Shown here: piece after piece, positions 850 through 49,787 of the stretch | How positions within the stretch are numbered: position 1 is the stretch's first letter | How the letters are laid out: each line of letters starts with the position of its first letter | NCBI GenBank assembly: GCA_047495785.1 | Contig: JBLDXI010000003.1 | Coordinates: 1,364,001-1,428,000 of the forward strand | Direction: 5' to 3' | Source of the DNA: Lepidodermella squamata | Lineage: Eukaryota > Animalia > Gastrotricha | Length of the DNA stretch: 64,000 nucleotides | The notes under the pieces: model-generated | Told to the model about the DNA's origin: nothing | Seen by the model: only the letters and a program-made list of their open reading frames with translations | Databases searched by the model: none | Translations under genes and position numbers: made by a program

Positions 850-3800
850 ATGGCGTCAGACTTCAGTTTAAGTACGAACGAAAGGAATCCGATCAATTCA
901 AATCGGGCCGTTTTTATCAGTTACAACTGCGTTCAGCGAAATTTGGTCATTCCGCTGTGCTCCAATCTAGTTCCAGCCCAGATTTTCCGTCATGTTTTCG
1001 CTGATTTTCAGAAAAACCCTGACGAAACGTCGGATAATTATGAACAGGCGATTCTTATCGCCGACTACGTCATCATTTTCTTCAGCAACGAGTATCGAAA
1101 TAGCAAGGCGTGTGAGGCTGAGGCGCGCATGATCATGCAACAACGGCGAGGTCCGACGTGTGTCGTTAAATTGTACCCGGCTTTCGATGATTCATCGCTT
1201 GTTGATGGGTTCAGCTTTGCGACTACGATTAGGCTGATGGCTAATGGCCAGAGTATCGATGACGCGGCTGTGGCGTTGACAATGGCTGTTAAGGAACACT
1301 TGGTCATTTTGCCAAATACGAGCCGCGAACAGCAGAAAAAGTGAGTAAAAAATTCCCTAAAATTCCATGTTCTTGGGATTTTTTTCCTTCGAAGTCGAAG
1401 GCTATATAAGCGTCAATGAGTGGCAGTTTCAAAGCGTTCAATTTTCGAATCGACTAATTTCATGAAATTTTGAAACTTGCTACGATCGCTTTTAGTTTGC
1501 CTCAGCGAAGGGTGATGTTGGAATGGGAAACCTGTGAAATTTTCAGATTTGCAAGCATTTCCGAGTTGAAAATTAAAACAATGGGATTTTACCATCGGGA
1601 TCTTTCAAAAATAAAATTGAAATAAAAAACGGGGTGATTACAACGAAAATAGATTTTTAGAAATAAATGATCAACTACTTATTTCTAATAAAATGTTGCA
1701 TAATTATTTGTCTCTGAAATATAATAATAATAATAATAATAGTAATAATAATAATAATAATCAGGGCACTTGAAATTCAGGTAAAAAGTTCAAATAATAA
1801 GGGAACCTCGTTTTCCAAAATAAATTCCAAAATTTTCCAAAAAATTGAAATCCCGTCTTTGCTTCATAATTTGTCACCAAAGGGTCATCCTAACATGGTT
1901 CAACTTTCAATGGCTTCGATTGCCCGGGATAATCCGATGAAAAAGAGAAAAATTCTCAAAATATACCTGCAAGCTGGGAAAAATATTGCTAATTTTTGTT
2001 TCAAAAATTCTGAAGAATTCCTAAATCATCTCTCTCGTCAGGGAGTCGGGTGTCCAACGTTGTTTTCTGGTTTTTCTCTGTTTCAAGGCTAATTCATTAA
2101 TTTTTGAATTTTTATTTTATCTCCATCGGAAACAGCCCAATCAAGTTTGTTGGACTACCTGAAGTCAGCCAGCATTACGACGTGCATGATGAGAATGAAA
2201 TATTGCTCAAACTACAAACTACATCGGCTCTTAAAGGTCAGCCGCGTAATTTTCGACCTCAACATTTTTTTGGCATCAATCCAAAAAGCAATAATTTTAG
2301 TATGCGTCTTTGGAAATTGATACGAAATGATAAAATTCAAAATTCAAAAGTTTTCTATTGACCTGAAAATGGTGGGAAATTCTCCAAAAATCACTGATCA
2401 CCGCTATTTTCGATGAATTGAAACAGGAATTATTTTTGGGATTTTTCATATTTTTTGAAATTTTCTTTTCAATAGGGGGCTTTCTCCTGGTATCTGGTGC
2501 TGGCGGTCTAGGAAAAACAACCCTAGTCGCTCATTTATTACAAAGCAGCCCAACCTTCCTCCAAGATCTCTGCGAATTCGACATCGTACTGTGGCTAAAT
2601 TGCCTGAAATGGCGAGAAAACGACCCTGAAACATTAATCGATTTCCACAAATCACTCGATCAGCTATTCAACCAGGCCGAAATCGAATCTTCGAAACAGA
2701 AACGGAATCAAGGCTCAAATTGCTTACTGGTCTTAGACGACGTTTACTCGACGAAAATTCTCGACGAAATCAGCTCGAAATATTTGAAGATGACCTGTCT
2801 CGTCATTAGCCGCGATAAAGATTTGACCTACTTGTTCAATGGCGTCGTTAAATTAGAAGAACTGAGCGAAAACTCGGTCATCGAGCTGTTCACTAAAAAC
2901 TATCAATTAACGACGTTGACCCGCGAGCAGCTGGAGAATCTGGCTAAATTAAGCTGTGGCCTGCCGCTAATTTGTTCGCTAATTGCCGCGCGATTTCGGG
3001 CTAGGTTAAAAGACAACGCCGCTCAAATTAGCGCGCTTGAATACCGGGCAATTACTAAGGAATTACTCGAAAATTCAACGCGGTCAATCGGCGATATTTT
3101 AGCCTTCACTCTAGAACGGGAAGATTCAGCTTTCAGGCAGACTTTCTACGCATTTTTGCTGTTCGAACCGAATGAGCCGGTGGATATTGACGATTTGGCC
3201 TTGTTGTGGAAATGCCCGTCTAATCATCAGGCTCTTGTTAGGTGTCAGCTATTTATGGGGAAATCGTTGATAAGGCAGGTTAATCGGGATGCTGAAAGTG
3301 GTGATGTTATGCCGAGGTTCACGCTTCATCAACTCATGCATGAAGCGGCAGTGGAAAATGCGTGTGAAAAGCGAGATTTCGCGATCGACTTGAACGAGCT
3401 AAGGTATATTTTATTCAAATAAATTTTATTTAAATTTTTTAATTATTTTTAAAATGTTTAAAATGAAGAATTATTAAACATTTAATTGAATTTAAAAACT
3501 CAAAAGATTGCATAACATTTTGAAATGTCCTAATTACCTATTTTTTTTCGAATTTTTATTTAAACATTTTTTAAGAAATTTATTCGAGAAAAATTCTGGG
3601 AAATTGATTAAAATGTTTTCATATTTTCCCAAGGTACAAAATAGTGACGGGCCATTGTAACCAATCGCTGAAATTGCAAAATTCGTCTCGCCGTGTCGAA
3701 TTGTTGGCAAAAGCTGCCCAGAACAATCAATGGAACCTTCTGAACAAGATTTTCGACCGTCTAGCACCGCGAGATTTGGCTGAAATCAGCCGCAAGAAGT

Positions 3801-40509: not shown

Positions 40510-42631
40510 TTAACAAGCCTCCGCACATTCTAGTTCTAGAATTTTGATTCGGTCCTTATCGTCCAAAAACTTGAGAATTGCAGGACCATCCGGATCACTT
40601 GCCAAATAACTTTCCAGATCAGACCGATTCATTCGTAGTATTGCTTTTTCGATAACGCTCATCGCATGATGAGCATCTTGGCCTTGAAATTCACCGCGTT
40701 TCACCGATGCGAAGAAAGAGCTGAGCAGAGTCCTTCTCCCAATACTTTGCCTGCAAAGATCGAGTAGATTTGAGGGATCGAGTTTCGAAACTATTTCGTC
40801 TAATAGATGCCATCGTTTGTTCGTGAATGCCTGAGAAAGGACTTCGCTACACTTCAGGATTCCTTTCGGCCTAACAGGCCCGTAACAACAGTCCCCAATA
40901 GCAATCCTTAACCGCAGTTGAGCCAAGGAATTTGCGAAATTCCGTGATTCCAACGCGTTTTTCAACAAAGACTCATAAATGAGAGGATGAAGTTTGAAGT
41001 ACGTCTCTTCGCCGATTGAAATGCATTGCAGGAAAGATTTGAACACAAATTGCTGACATTTAGCTGTTGCCTGGTGCAGGGAATTGAGTCGCCATACAAC
41101 TGAAAGATCTTCACACGGAACTAGCTCACCAGGCTCGAAGAGTAAAAATGCATAGAAAATCCGTCTGAGATTCGATTCAGTGATATTCAGGCCACATTCA
41201 ACAAGACCTCCGACTGGGTTGATGTTGGATATAATGTATTTACCCTGGTGCTCAGGAGAGGCCGTCATCAAAGCCTCGTAAACTCCTCTAGGAATCGGCA
41301 GTGAGTAGTCTTTGAGCCTGCAAACGAAACGAGACCCAACGAGGTTGATTGCAATGGGTAGGCCTCTTGTAACTTTGGCTAGGTTCTTCATTTCTTCATC
41401 ATCCAACTTGCCACGTAGTTTGTAGACACTCTCTAGAATGTTGATGACCCTCTTCTCATCCAAACTCGCAAGGTATTGAGCGCTGCATATCTTCTGTAGG
41501 TTGAATTGAAGATGGATTTTCGATAGGATGTCCAAGTCGTTGGTAAGGGCGATACACGGTATATCAGGCCAGTTTTCATGGAAACACTCGAGTTCATTCA
41601 CGTTTTTGACACTATCAAGGACGAATAAGATTCTCTTCGGTACCGAGCCGTCTTCCTCTGTTGGCATGAGCTCGCTGATAGTTTTTGCGAATTCATCTTC
41701 GTCAAAACAAGTTCTGTTGTTCCGGTACCATTTCGCGCAGTCGCACCACACTACGTAATCGAAGCCACATGTTTCGCGAAGGAAGTCTTGTTTCGAGTTT
41801 ACAATTCGGCTTAACAAGACAGTTTTTCCGACTCCACTTACACCGGTGACTAGCAGCATCTTCACTACGTTGGAGGCCTCGAATAAGGGACGAATGTGAA
41901 GACTCTCCAAGGCTTCCAAAAGCTCGCGTTCTCGATGTTCGATCAAGTAATAAGGCTCTCCAATAAACTTTGGTACATTGATAAGCTGTAACCTGTGGAA
42001 TAGAGATAGGAAATGTAAGGCCAGTAAATTTGAGCTAAGTTAAGTTCAATTTAACATGAAAACCAAAAACTAATGAGATACCAAGCTCGATTTTTACGAA
42101 AATGTGAAGGGAAATGGACTCACTTTTCGGGCCGTGGACTGCGTCTCTTCAAATGCTGCGTAGCCATGAATTTCTTGAGTGCAGTGGCAACTTTTTCACA
42201 GGCAACATCAAACGGCTCATCTGGCGTGACTGAGAAGTCGATTTGACCCGCGGGTGGGTTGCCCCCTGGCAGTTGGTAGTGACTGAACGGCGATAAGCGG
42301 ATTAGGAAAATGGGTTTATCGATCGACGCCATGATAGCCGCCTCCTTCTCACACATGGCACTTTTCTGGTAGTCGTCGCATGTTATCAGTATGACAAATT
42401 CCGTAGACTCAAGATCCTGCAAGCAATGAAAATTCAACAATTTCGGAATTGAGATAAGAAATTCCTTACCTCACAGACTTTTTCCAGATCTTTTGGGCCT
42501 GTGTCTGGAGATTGGTTGTAGTCGATATTCATATTGCTCGAAAAAATGTGTTTCGACATCAAATAGTTGCAAATTTGCCGGACAGTGTCCTTCTGGGCGC
42601 AGCAATAGGTCACGCAGGCTAACACGCTCAT
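40510..42631 (-). CDS. TIR - NB-ARC protein without a repeat sensor (paralogue of 850-6646)
   Basis: Exons 42631-42470, 42416-42124, 41992-40510. TIR SAMCEKEA; Walker A GVSGVGKT, Walker B LFVLDSV, GLPI. Shares FYAFLLFEP and a phase-2 post-TIR intron with the long paralogue. Confidence 0.85.
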
Positions 42632-44047: not shown

Positions 44048-45335
44048 TCATATCGGTGTAACAATGTGTGAAGTCTCTCCACTAAGAATTCGGCGGCTCG
44101 ACTGAAGTGGCTGTTTAATAACCTTTGCTGTAGAAATTCCGCCAGTTCCCCCAGTTTTGCTGTTCGTAGTTCGCACGGTGCCAATGGCAGTAGTGTTATT
44201 AACCCGTGATCCTACCTGCTTTTTGCCGCCAGGCCACCAAGGCAGTTTCTTTGAAAAACCTGGCTTCAACGTTTTTATGCAGGCGGATAGACTCATTTCC
44301 AATAAAATGCACACTTCGCCGTACTTGAGCAGTTGTCCACTTGCGTGCTTAGGGCCGATTTCACGATAGAACAGCTGAAGAATGAAATGAATAGTCAACG
44401 GCATGTGGCAGCTCATGTAGACGAGGAATGCAGCTAGCGATTGTTTTGCGATGAACATCTCCTTTTTGTACCACTCTTCCTCGATCTGATTACTTTTCGC
44501 GCTTCGAAATCGGACTCGTGCAGCTCGGATGGTGTGGAAAATCTTCCAGTAGTTGTAGGCCAGTCCAGAGCAAACTGTTTGCGATACGAAAACGAAGTAA
44601 ACAACGCCGAGGATGAGACTATCGACTGGGCCAGCAGCGAGGCGATCAACGAAAGATCCGCAAATTCGAACCGGTGGTGATGAAGTGGTTATGTTAGGGC
44701 TAATATCATTCATCAAGATCAGCCGTATCAATGGCAACGGGGTGAAAGACATAAGCATGCAAGCGACGCAGCAGAAAACCAGCAAACCGAAAGCCATACC
44801 GATCAGCTGTAATGTAAATGTTAAGAAATACTGAGGAATAATTGTTAGAGCTAACCTTGCGAGTATTGGACCGGTAAATGCTATTGGAGGCAACGCAAAC
44901 ACGACGTTCGTAGCTGATCAGAAGATTGACGAAAATGCCGTAACTGCCCGCGAACGTGTTGATCCAAAATGTGACATGGCACGCGATTTCGCTTGCTTCC
45001 CAGTAGCCAGTCGATAGTGTCACGAACAAAGCGGACGTCCAGTTGCCGGCCCATAGTACGTTTCGCGCAGCTGCTAGACTACACAGTATCAAAAAGTCGC
45101 GATTCACGTTACGCCTGTAGTAAATGAAGATATTCGCGACGCTTGCGAGAATGCCGACGATTGCTGCAACTGCAGTGACCGCGGTGTAAGACAATCGATC
45201 GTTGATCGACTGAGTGCTCAAATCGTGGTACCATCCAACGAAATACGGTCTCGGTCCTTCGAAGCCACGCTCCGGCAGATCGGCGAGTATCCACGAGCCG
45301 CCGGGCAGTATACTTGCATTGAACACTATCGACAT
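44048..45335 (-). CDS. Divergent orphan rhodopsin-like GPCR
   Basis: Exons 45335-44856 and 44806-44048 (49-nt intron). TM3 Cys and ISYER at the DRY position; TM5 YNYWKIF; TM6 KQSLAAFLVYMSCHMPL. Confidence 0.72.
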
Positions 45336-45887
45336 TCGTTGTATGCTTTCAAAAATGATTTTGGATAAATGAAACCACCCACAGTTTACATTCGCTTCTT
45401 CTCCTTTTTTTTCAAACACAGGAAATGGTATCATGTGTCAACATGAGCATCGATCAAGCATGAAAAACCTCCGCATGAACCTGCACAGACAAATTGCGTC
45501 GATTTACTGCGAATAGTAGCCATCAAGGCTGAATTCGAAGAAATTGCTTTTGCTTAGCGATTTTGCTGTGCTTAAAGCAGCGGTAATTCAAATGTTTCCC
45601 CAATGAACTGCAGTTGTGACATCACAGCTGCAGATACGTGTCCTTCCTATCGTCCGGCGAAGCGAAACCTGGCGAAGCCTGGCGTCCTGCTTCTTTCTTC
45701 TTCTTCTAGATTCTCGAAAGCGTTCTTGTTTCCCCGTATCTCTCCCACCTTTCAATGCCATATCTGGAGCGGACATGTGTAGTAGACAAGCGAGAGATAT
45801 GGCATGATAGAGTCCTGATAACTCACCCTCGAAACAACTTTCGGCTTGGCTATATGCTGCATTTTCGTCCTAAATACTCAGTCAGAA

Positions 45888-46838
45888 ATGGCACCCGTGA
45901 AGTTTCTCATTCTTGCTGTCACATTTTGCTACGTCCAGTGCAACGAGCCTGAAATTCCGCCGTGTAACGATGGCTTTTGTCCTCTCGATTCACGATTGAT
46001 ACCACTCAACTCGACTGAAGGCTACGAGATGCTAATGGACGGCAGGCCACACCACTTTTTCCAGTATATTCAGAACCTGGAGACGCAGCAATCTGCAATT
46101 CAATGTTGGCTGGGGACAGTTGTAACCGTCCTAAATTCAATTCATATCGACCCGCCGCATACCTACTGCGACAATGATGGAAATTCGTGTTACCGCCATT
46201 TTACGCAAGACTACATCGTCAATGACAATAACTGCACTATGGCTGTAATTGGAAATCCTTATGTCGGAATCTCGCTAACTCAAATGTCAAATCTCTTCCA
46301 GTGTTTCAATCTAACCACACAAATTCATTTTCATAACGAGACAACTCGCGACGGATTTATTGAGCTCTTCAGGAAAACTGTTGAAAGAGACGTTTTCGTC
46401 ATTGCGAACTACAAACGAGGCCCGGCATTACAGCAGCCACTTGACGGTGCTCATTACAGCCCAGTTGGCGCCTACAGTGAGGACAGAGACCGTGTGCTGA
46501 TGCTGGATGTTGCTCGGTATAAATATCCGCCGGAATGGGTGCCTACCCAGGATATGATCAATGCGATCAGCACTTGGTCCAGTGCTGATGAGCCGAGAGG
46601 CATTTTACTGGTGTACGGACGATCATATCCCGAGCAGATTTCCATAGGTGAGCTCTGAGTACTGAAGTTAGCACATTTGAAACTCGTCTCTTGTGTTGCA
46701 GATTATCAGGGCGAGAAGTTTCGTGGAATGGTACTGCTTGTCACGACCTGTGTTTTCGCAGCGCTTACCGTTCTTTTAATGGTCGCTCTGGTCCTTCAGC
46801 GGAAAAAGACTCGCCGTGCAACTTATATAGCAATTTAA
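45888..46838 (+). CDS. Phytochelatin-synthase-family (papain-like) enzyme with signal peptide, TM helix and YxxPhi tail
   Basis: Exons 45888-46647 and 46702-46838. ETQ-x5-C, AHYSPVGAY, LDVARYKYPPEWV give the Cys/His/Asp triad. Exon 2 encodes TM + RKKTRRATYIAI*. Confidence 0.9.
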
Positions 46839-47202
46839 ACATTAAATCAATTTTTACTTTGAAATGATGCCTGATATCCGGTTAATTCCGAGCAGAGTCA
46901 TTGAGTTTTTACTTTATGCCCGCATCTTGATCAAATCGAATAAACATCTCTTATTTCTCTGAGCGTAAAGCTGGTGGTGAATTTCCTTTTGTTTTCAGAG
47001 TCACATTTCATCATTGGTGCTGTTAGTGCCAAGATCCAAGATGCATAGTAAACTTAGGCAAGTAGTGAGCAAAACAATGCCGGAACACATGAATGGAGCT
47101 GTAAACAAACGTGTGCTCTTTCGCTATTACTACAACAGCCACATAAGCGTGGAGCTCAGCTCACCATAGTAAAATAAGAGCAGCTAACATTTCCTACCAA
47201 GC

Positions 47203-48404
47203 ATGCCCGAATTTCTGACGCAATCTCAATTTCAAGCGCTGAAAAATCATACTTACAAATGCGAGGGGCGGAGCTTCTTAGAGGAGCACATCCTACGCCA
47301 CTTTTGGGACTTTATCATGCGATTCGTCCCACTGAGATGGGTAAGACCTCATTTTCGTGAATTAGTCAAAGTTAATCTCGGAATTTCAAGGCGCCAAACT
47401 CGATGACTCTAACCGGGCTTGTTTGCATGGTTATCCCATTCTGCATCCTGGTCAGCTACAACTCAGGCGCTAAGCAGCATGACATCCCAGGCTGGCCTTA
47501 TCTCGCCATGGCTTTGGGAATGTTCATCTTTCAGACATTGGACAACCTGGACGGTCGGCAGGCCCGGAGGACAAAAAGCTCAAGTGCCTTGGGCGAATTC
47601 TTTGACCACGGGTGCGACACTATCTCCGACGCATGCATGACATTGTCCATTGCTATGGCGATTCGAATCGGAACGAATCTCGACCTAATGTTCATCTACG
47701 GCCTTTGCATTATTCAGGACTATGGCTTCTTCTGGCGGGCACATTGGACCGGGACTCACGTGTTTGGCGATGTTGATATCAGTGAAATTCAATGGATTAT
47801 CATTACAGTCCTCACTGCCACAGGGCTGAACCCGAAAATTTGGCACGAAACAGTGATTTACGGCTCAATTGATCTGAAATTAGTCATCACTTGCATTGCA
47901 TTCTTCTTCGCGATTTTCTATGTTGGTGACGTATTGCAAGACGTTTTTCGCATTGGAATTCTCAACAAAACTGGCGATAAGGAGACGAGGAAAAATGTTA
48001 CAGAGCCTTTGAAAGCTTTGCTGGTCAACATGGGACTAGCAACTTTGGCAAGATATCTGTCTAATGGCGTCTACGAAAGCTACCCTATTGCTTTCTTCAT
48101 TGTTTACGTAATTGTCATGGCGAAAATATCCTGCCGCCTTCTGATAGCGAATATGACGAAAACGCGTATGATAACGCTGGATAGCTCGTATTTCGCCTAT
48201 GCATTTCTGGTTCTTGCTAATCCTAACTACGTGCCAAATTCGCTGCATGTCTCGCAATCGGCAGCTGTTTTTGTAGCAGCTGCTTTTGCGGCTTTCGATT
48301 TTGTAAAATACTCCGTTTGCATCTGTACGCAAATTGCTGACTTTTTAGGGATTTATTGCCTCAGTTTGGACAAGCCAAAAGCCGAAGAACAGAAAAACAA
48401 ATGA
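47203..48404 (+). CDS. Choline/ethanolamine phosphotransferase (CEPT/CHPT/EPT family)
   Basis: Exons 47203-47340 and 47391-48404. WAPNSMT; CDP-alcohol phosphotransferase motif DNLDGRQARRT..LGEFFDHGCD. Confidence 0.92.
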
Positions 48405-49085: not shown

Positions 49086-49787
49086 ATGGCTTCAACTTTG
49101 TCACGACTCGACAACTGGCTGTCACACAAACTATCGATTTGCGCCAACGACCAGTCGAAATACGGCAATTTAAGATGGGCGATGAAAGCCTTGGAATGGA
49201 CTGGCAATGAAGCCCTGGTTTTCCCGATCGTTCTAATCCTAATCGCCGCTGCGGTCCCGCACCATGTCGATAGGATAACGCCTCATGAAGAAGTCAACGG
49301 ACTCCATGCGCAACTCCCGGCCTTCCTCGCTGTATTTTTCGGCCTTTTGATCGAAGTTTTCGCTGTGATTTTGGTCAAGCTTGCTGTCAAGCGGCCACGG
49401 CCTCAAATTAACAGAATGGATATGCACATGGTTCTGCCCGATGTCGACCAGTACAGCTTCCCATCCGGTCATACATCACGAATGACTATGCTGTGCTTCC
49501 TCATGAGTGAATTGTACTCCGACTTCCTCTACGCTCATCCTTACGCCTGGCCGATAGCTGCAATGACGATATTCGTTGGAATCATCGCAGTTTCCAGGGT
49601 CCTGCTCGGTCGCCACTTCCCGTCTGATGTCATTGCTGGAGTTTTCCTCGGAGTCGCTGTGGCTCAGTTGGTCATGTATGGCCTGGTGCCGTTTTTCGAG
49701 AACCATCGGATTCCAATCGAAAACGCCCTGTTCCACGTCAAAACCGTTGTTCCCTTCACATTCAGCAGCATTGTTCCTTCGAGCTAA
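49086..49787 (+). CDS. PAP2 lipid phosphatase, PLPP6/7-like (intronless)
   Basis: KLAVKRPRP, SFPSGH, SRVLLGRHFPSDV. Confidence 0.92.
   Translation: MASTLSRLDNWLSHKLSICANDQSKYGNLRWAMKALEWTGNEALVFPIVLILIAAAVPHHVDRITPHEEVNGLHAQLPAFLAVFFGLLIEVFAVILVKLAVKRPRPQINRMDMHMVLPDVDQYSFPSGHTSRMTMLCFLMSELYSDFLYAHPYAWPIAAMTIFVGIIAVSRVLLGRHFPSDVIAGVFLGVAVAQLVMYGLVPFFENHRIPIENALFHVKTVVPFTFSSIVPSS

Follow-up and report, generated by a model that had tools for sequence, protein, structure and literature searches.

We consider it probable that a gene of the gastrotrich Lepidodermella squamata is a functional two-exon animal gene for an extracytoplasmic, membrane-tethered cysteine peptidase of the phytochelatin synthase (PCS) family, within the short branch that includes Alr0975 of the cyanobacterium Nostoc. 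The gene lies at positions 45888-46838 of the stretch of DNA analyzed here, which we call the window (64,000 nucleotides (nt); GenBank assembly GCA_047495785.1, contig JBLDXI010000003.1, positions 1,364,001 to 1,428,000, forward strand). The family, its fold, its chemistry and the occurrence of eukaryotic short forms are already known; what is particular to this gene is its animal host and a separate exon that supplies a helix and a tail. Its features, as read from the open reading frame (ORF) and its translation, are the following.

45888..46647, plus strand: exon 1, 760 nt, with the ATG at 45888, codons 1-253 and the first base of codon 254; it holds the start codon, the signal peptide and the entire PCS-like catalytic domain
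45888..45941, plus strand: predicted signal peptide, residues 1-18 (MAPVK, a hydrophobic core, VQC, then NEP)
45981..46601, plus strand: phytochelatin synthase domain PF05023 (papain fold), residues 32-238
46104-46106, plus strand: putative catalytic Cys73 (TGT)
46107-46109, plus strand: Trp74 (TGG), directly after the catalytic Cys, in QCWLG
46452..46454, plus strand: putative catalytic His189
46506..46508, plus strand: putative catalytic Asp207, in the motif LDVARYKYPP
46648..46701, plus strand: predicted spliceosomal intron, 54 nt, phase 1, GT..AG (GTGAGC...TGTTGCAG)
46702..46838, plus strand: exon 2, 137 nt, with a linker, the membrane helix, the cytoplasmic tail and a TAA stop at 46836-46838
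46728..46796, plus strand: predicted transmembrane helix, residues 263-285 (23 residues)
46797..46835, plus strand: predicted cytoplasmic tail QRKKTRRATYIAI, 13 residues, with the YxxPhi motif YIAI (46824-46835) at the extreme C-terminus

The catalytic domain matched PF05023 over profile positions 5-209 of 210 with 142.2 bits (cut-off 24.9; E 1.7e-41), far above chance; we take this family to be MEROPS family C83. NCBIfam returned no match to the protein, and searches of the protein atlas and of the atlas folds gave the same family name as Pfam. The sole solved relatives are the PDB entries for Nostoc Alr0975 (E 7e-29). An AlphaFold (AF2) model built from a 51-row alignment has a mean predicted local distance difference test score (pLDDT) of 92.5, and Foldseek placed it on Alr0975 (6th5/2btw) with a target-normalised template modelling score of 0.90-0.91 and a root-mean-square deviation (rmsd) of 1.9 Å; the next-best folds were distant papain-like peptidases. 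The model also superposes on the glutathione-bound and acyl-enzyme entries of Alr0975 (2bu3, 6tho; rmsd 1.7-1.9 Å). Within this fold, Cys73 aligns with the catalytic Cys of Alr0975, His189 with its GGHISP motif and Asp207 with its third triad residue. All three are intact, as are Gln67 of the oxyanion hole, Arg177 and Arg237, and all six lie in near-invariant columns among 250 family members. Because the fold and these six residues are preserved, the enzyme looks active by sequence and model.

Several features set the protein in the short type of the family. The loop CYRHFTQDY, which aligns with bacterial YHAFTQ and YSTFTQ rows, and the strand FVIANY are of the short PCS-like kind, whereas canonical animal PCS have WKGPWRW and LSY or TSY. 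Only 48 residues (linker, helix and tail) follow the domain, and there is no C-terminal Cys-rich regulatory domain. Alr0975 (NsPCS of Nostoc sp. PCC 7120, a "primitive" or half-size PCS; 2btw, 2bu3, 6th5, 6tho, 6tjl) has the same fold at 32-33% identity, the same Gln, Cys, His, Asp and Arg residues, and the corresponding YxxFTQ loop and xVIxNY strand; it likewise has no C-terminal regulatory domain, carries an N-terminal leader and works outside the cytoplasm. The window protein departs from Alr0975 in its eukaryotic signal peptide and sequons, in the nine Cys of its mature luminal part with their CxxxxC cap, in the Trp after the catalytic Cys, in the separate exon for helix and tail, and in its animal host. 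A proposed signature near the catalytic Cys is Asn in group 1 and Asp or Glu in group 2 (PMC11314372). At the position that we read as this signature from our own alignment (-4), the window protein has Ser and its close clade Ser, Thr, Glu or His, so that the signature does not apply here; P0007 and P0046 have Asn there, and the canonical animal rows have Glu.

The protein is predicted to be exported and anchored. Residues 1-18 combine a hydropathy of 2.56 over 10 residues with V at -3 and C at -1, which fits the -3/-1 rule, and the structure model has a helix at residues 3-18. At the other end, residues 263-285 reach a Kyte-Doolittle mean of up to 2.66 over 19 residues and are followed by the basic cluster QRKKTRR. 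From hydropathy and the -3/-1 rule, we predict a type I membrane topology, with the catalytic domain on the non-cytosolic side, provided that exon 2 is spliced on. A glycosylphosphatidylinositol (GPI) reading of this C-terminus was ruled out by the 13 residues, five of them basic, that follow the helix. The mature luminal part has four sequons (N41, N115, N141 and N150), of which N150 is common to five of the seven close-clade members and missing from two bacterial rows. Its nine Cys include the CxxxxC cap, which is specific to the close clade and stands before the domain in five of its members, and the pair Cys116/Cys139. The signal peptide, the several sequons, the intact triad and the short Alr0975-type loops listed in the initial annotation were all recovered.

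That annotation also had the enzyme "turned into" a membrane protein. The type I layout stands by sequence, but the wording overstates the change, as leaders and anchors recur across the short branch. A crude hydropathy screen counted an N-terminal hydrophobic leader in ~70-75% of short forms as against 0/40 canonical sequences. Among eukaryotic short forms, Dunaliella, red-algal sequences, P0247 and P0078/P0082, for example, likewise have C-terminal anchors, P0078/P0082 with the full type I layout. Since leaders are common and C-terminal anchors recur, we take export to be the inherited state of the short branch and the topology not to be an invention of this gene. In the diatom-derived P0234 (Nitzschia sp., EukProt), we noted a near-perfect tandem duplicate of 766 residues, each half of which combines a short PCS-like domain with a hydrophobic anchor of its own and a charged linker rich in Lys and Glu.

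The gene is a real, resident and constrained animal gene. Sequencing run X2, which is DNA, covers the gene and its flanks at even depth with two haplotypes present. Exon 1 carries 20 haplotype differences (45888-46460; 3-5% locally), 12 synonymous and 8 nonsynonymous, and the ratio of nonsynonymous to synonymous polymorphism between haplotypes (pN/pS) is ~0.18. Over 46431-47012 both haplotypes merge into one X2 contig without differences. The family is best known from bacteria and one relative's metagenomic contig (L003) looks chimeric, two facts that would suit contamination of the assembly or a chimera in which bacterial DNA was joined to an animal scaffold. We give this explanation almost no weight, and treat contamination as ruled out, given the same two-haplotype depth in gene and flanks, the spliceosomal-type intron, the eukaryotic-style leader and anchor, and the position of the gene between animal genes; nor is there an excess of sigma-70-like sites or terminators. 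The chimeric-looking L003 contig belongs to relative P0237. It bears an ORF resembling a penicillin-binding protein (D-Ala-D-Ala carboxypeptidase-like; 865-1239, minus strand), which overlaps the place where the similarity of P0237 ends, at the catalytic His. The SAM synthetase encoded in the window shares no more than 67% identity with any database protein, and its named matches within the top 120 are all animals, of several phyla, which fits an animal host that lacks close sequenced relatives. A tblastn search found no paralogue within the 64-kb window, and the neighbouring genes are the following.

40510-41946, minus strand: NACHT/NB-ARC gene
44051-45434, minus strand: rhodopsin-type seven-transmembrane gene (weak match)
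47203-48404, plus strand: CDP-alcohol phosphotransferase, with an intron at 47341-47390
49086-49787, plus strand: PAP2 phosphatase

To place the protein within its family, we combined an exhaustive HMMER search over 1.84 billion representatives with a tree of 83 domain sequences (IQ-TREE, LG+C20+F+G4). The search returned 2399 family members, eight of them at E 1e-30 or better. A word search with the conserved ARFKYPP region found only 27 canonical PCS candidates, and the named canonical animal sequences were taken from the exhaustive search and from cluster look-ups. A scan of Joint Genome Institute (JGI) metagenomes with the close-clade alignment gave no new close relative, its matches being only 29-36% identical to the query. 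The close clade consists of the window protein and six of those eight family members, plus the fragment P0003 (support 100/98; 33-50% identity to the window protein), with all the relatives coming from Logan assemblies or metagenomes. A long branch (0.89) leads to this clade, which falls among the short forms, inside a 36-row assemblage (83/80) that holds all 12 named eukaryotic short forms and 0/9 named bacteria. The eukaryotes of the assemblage are Hemiselmis, Dunaliella, Amoebidium, Nitzschia, a red alga, protists from MMETSP and EukProt, and a picoeukaryote-like pair. The Cys116/Cys139 pair supports placement in this eukaryote-rich assemblage: it is present in 7/7 members of the clade, 22-25 of 29 assemblage rows and 40/40 canonical sequences, whereas the remaining short forms, which are mostly bacterial, have it in only 22-29 of 174 cases.

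The window protein is not a canonical animal PCS. The 16 canonical rows with a WKGPWRW-type loop, among them Solemya, Helobdella, Acanthocheilonema, Polysphondylium and Pleodorina, split from the rest at 100/100. An approximately unbiased (AU) test rejected a tree joining the close clade to the three canonical animal PCS (log-likelihood (lnL) difference 57.6, p 0.0038), and the grouping with animal PCS that could have overturned the initial annotation was thus not found. These three (Solemya velum P0323, Helobdella robusta P0335 and Acanthocheilonema viteae P0264) share with the window protein the Pfam family, the catalytic residues and the Cys116/Cys139 pair. In contrast to the window protein, they have the WKGPWRW loop and a C-terminal domain, and canonical forms have no leader. 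Other canonical animal PCS are those of C. elegans, Schistosoma and the earthworm.

A further comparison is with the eukaryotic short "group 1" PCS-like forms (PMC11314372), here Dunaliella P0300, Hemiselmis P0362, Nitzschia P0234, red alga P0259, Amoebidium P0268 and the picoeukaryote-like P0078/P0082. They share the maximum-likelihood (ML) branch, the Cys116/Cys139 pair and N-terminal leaders with the window protein, and several have C-terminal hydrophobic anchors. They are only 27-31% identical to it, though, and have neither the CxxxxC cap nor a terminal YxxPhi tail. No animal is represented among the named eukaryotic short forms, of whose hosts Amoebidium (Ichthyosporea) stands closest to animals.

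Several observations weigh against the reading of an anchored glutathione peptidase, and they concern the splice junction, the active site, the deep placement of the clade and the tail. The first is the junction 46647/46702. On the sequence, the spliced coding sequence is 897 nt and encodes 298 residues. The donor GTGAGC and the acceptor CAG ending at 46701, behind a pyrimidine-rich intron end, are consensus sites, and the frame of exon 2, continuing that of exon 1, runs for 45 codons before its stop. Introns this short are normal here, because the next gene downstream has a GT..AG intron of 50 nt at 47341-47390. Run X1 is only guessed to be RNA. Its contigs match exactly at 46586-46635, the end of exon 1, and at 46707-46871, in exon 2 (100% identity on 46707-46871); depth is zero over 46636-46670, and among the listed pieces one stops at 46635 and the next starts at 46707. 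Seventeen further X1 pieces add depth somewhere within 46671-46721. No X1 contig bridging the junction was seen among the listed pieces. Two low-depth X1 contigs fuse opposite strands (46586 with 46760, and 46775 with 46871) and are probably hairpin artefacts of library or assembly, and one X1 contig of 132 nt has 30 letters that place nowhere.

Exon 2 might thus be unused, or used only sometimes, with intron retention yielding a soluble secreted enzyme of 256 residues that has neither anchor nor sorting tail. Besides the missing bridge, this alternative draws on the stop that ends a retained intron after three codons (GEL*) and on the many short PCS-like proteins that stop right after the domain. 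We nevertheless regard it as improbable and hold with good confidence that the anchored form is made. The splice sites and intron length are those expected, the continuation encodes a textbook helix followed by a basic cluster, and X1 has matches on 46707-46871 but zero depth over 46636-46670. In addition, close relatives with complete C-termini bear a hydrophobic C-terminal segment (GPI-like in P0001, P0002, P0231 and P0232; a helix with a short tail in P0003), such that without exon 2 the anchor would be missing in the window protein alone. The second exon with helix and tail described in the initial annotation is therefore present in the sequence, and its splicing to exon 1 is a prediction. 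At the other end of the gene, no in-frame ATG lies 5' of 45888 within the open frame. An acceptor-like TACTCAG occurs at 45876-45887, six bases 5' of the ATG, and could be a trans-splice site if the genome uses spliced leaders.

The second set of observations concerns the chemistry. Of 250 family domains, 211 carry Gly immediately behind the catalytic Cys, 19 carry Ser and 17 Ala; the window protein alone has Trp there, and Trp74 could alter the pocket for the acceptor or the leaving group. Nor is every relative an enzyme, because close-clade member P0233 (L004:476-1102, groundwater metagenome) has lost the catalytic Cys and His, along with the oxyanion Gln, while keeping the fold motifs; by its sequence it is a pseudo-enzyme or a decaying copy. 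For the close clade as a whole, activity, substrate and compartment are predictions. The Nostoc PCS acts mainly as a peptidase, taking Gly off glutathione and its conjugates, and one other cyanobacterial short PCS makes phytochelatins with cadmium (PMC7411734); because of the latter, "hydrolase only" is unsafe as a rule.

An alternative that fits part of this evidence is a peptidase or pseudo-peptidase with a substrate other than glutathione, such as another gamma-glutamyl or small cell-surface peptide, or a binding protein. The unusual Trp74, the lost catalytic residues of P0233 and the long branch under the close clade all count in its favor, and free reduced glutathione is scarce outside cells. 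Papain itself has Cys-Trp at its active site. We think this alternative unlikely, since Q67, C73, R177, H189, D207 and R237 are all kept and the modeled fold superposes on both the glutathione-bound and the acyl-enzyme forms of Alr0975.

Third, the deep placement of the close clade is weak. The AU test did not reject a position sister to the cyanobacterial/alphaproteobacterial clade (lnL difference 11.7, p 0.28), nor one sister to the whole canonical clade (lnL difference 3.5, p 0.44). The former position, together with the cyanobacterial identity of the top named matches outside the close clade (34-35%), the Nostoc origin of the best solved structure and the confinement of the catalytic domain to a single exon, would agree with recent horizontal transfer out of a cyanobacterium or proteobacterium, after which the gene gained a leader of eukaryotic type, an intron and the exon for the anchor. 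We see this history as a minority possibility that still deserves weight. Against it, the ML tree sets the clade with eukaryotic short forms and with none of the named bacteria, the Cys116/Cys139 pair that the clade shares with all canonical sequences is scarce among the mostly bacterial short forms, identity to any bacterium is at most ~36%, and long exons are usual in the window. Horizontal acquisition, which the initial annotation had entertained, is accordingly neither shown nor excluded. Its label "bacterial-type" does not hold: the ML tree sets the gene among eukaryotic short forms, and the branch contains many eukaryotes. The label is a misnomer for the family at large, because the two PCS groups each include prokaryotes and eukaryotes (PMC11314372). 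From the small cost of the position sister to the canonical clade and the shared Cys pair, the root of canonical PCS may lie near the exported eukaryotic short forms.

Finally, the tail departs from its presumed model. The Lamp1 tail has 11 residues with Tyr at position 8 after Gly; delivery to lysosomes was lost when one residue was deleted or five were inserted, and YXXI with an RKR anchor was sufficient for targeting (PMC2199866). Like the Lamp1-type glycoproteins, the window protein has a predicted type I topology, a short tail that is basic next to the membrane, and YxxI at the extreme C-terminus (RKR...YQTI in Lamp1). It differs from them in lacking homology and in its tail of 13 residues instead of 11; Tyr stands at position 10, or at 9 should the Gln be buried, compared with 8 in Lamp1, so that the Lamp1 spacing is not kept, and the residue before Tyr is Thr in place of Gly. 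The tails of relatives P0003 and P0078 contain no YIAI-like motif. By a rough estimate, a C-terminal YxxPhi would occur in ~1% of tails by chance. We suggest that YIAI is likely an endocytic signal of some kind, whereas residence of the protein in lysosomes is a possible but doubtful outcome. The LAMP-type lysosomal tail proposed earlier is thereby retained as a terminal YxxPhi in a short tail, but not as a tail with Lamp1 spacing or one shared by relatives.

Taking the anchored peptidase as the preferred reading, we propose the following mechanism. The signal peptide would take the protein into the endoplasmic reticulum, where the catalytic domain would be glycosylated and disulfide-bonded, and the exon 2 helix would anchor it in the membrane in type I orientation, the 13-residue tail reaching into the cytosol. 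By analogy with the Nostoc enzyme, His189, Asp207 and the oxyanion Gln67 would help Cys73 to attack the Cys-Gly bond of its substrate, either glutathione or one of the S-conjugates of glutathione; glycine would leave, a gamma-Glu-Cys acyl-enzyme would form, and water would resolve it. PDB titles record that the solved family member forms such a gamma-Glu-Cys acyl-enzyme with glutathione. Glycine would then come off first, ahead of any gamma-glutamyl transpeptidase (GGT) step, at endosomal, lysosomal or plasma membranes, on their luminal or outer face. For endocytic traffic, the terminal YIAI would probably bind adaptor complexes, which is a guess, as is the lysosome as the end point. The close clade would comprise membrane-anchored relatives with GPI-like or helix anchors, originating either by old eukaryotic inheritance with loss or by transfer from a bacterium or another eukaryote.

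To our knowledge, judging from the literature and the sequences found, the known animal phytochelatin synthases are cytosolic, canonical and tied to metal detoxification, and the literature searched describes no animal short PCS-like protein that is exported or anchored in a membrane. Extracellular glutathione breakdown in animals is textbook gamma-glutamyl transpeptidase chemistry, and glycine-first catabolism of glutathione conjugates occurs in plants. The practical value of the finding is modest until activity and localisation are measured. For the family, it means that the short PCS form is not "bacterial" but spread across eukaryotes and usually exported, and that membrane anchors were added in several lineages by different means, here via a dedicated exon. 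More speculatively, and with low confidence, the close clade could represent an undescribed group of eukaryotic ecto-enzymes: membrane-tethered (by GPI or helix), glycosylated and disulfide-bonded PCS-like peptidases that provide GGT-independent, glycine-first breakdown of glutathione and its conjugates in at least one animal lineage. Because a position sister to the whole canonical clade was not rejected, the close clade might also mark a secreted ancestor of the cytosolic phytochelatin synthases. If the window protein is active on the outer or luminal face, it would provide animals with a second entry point to glutathione-conjugate catabolism, glycine first.

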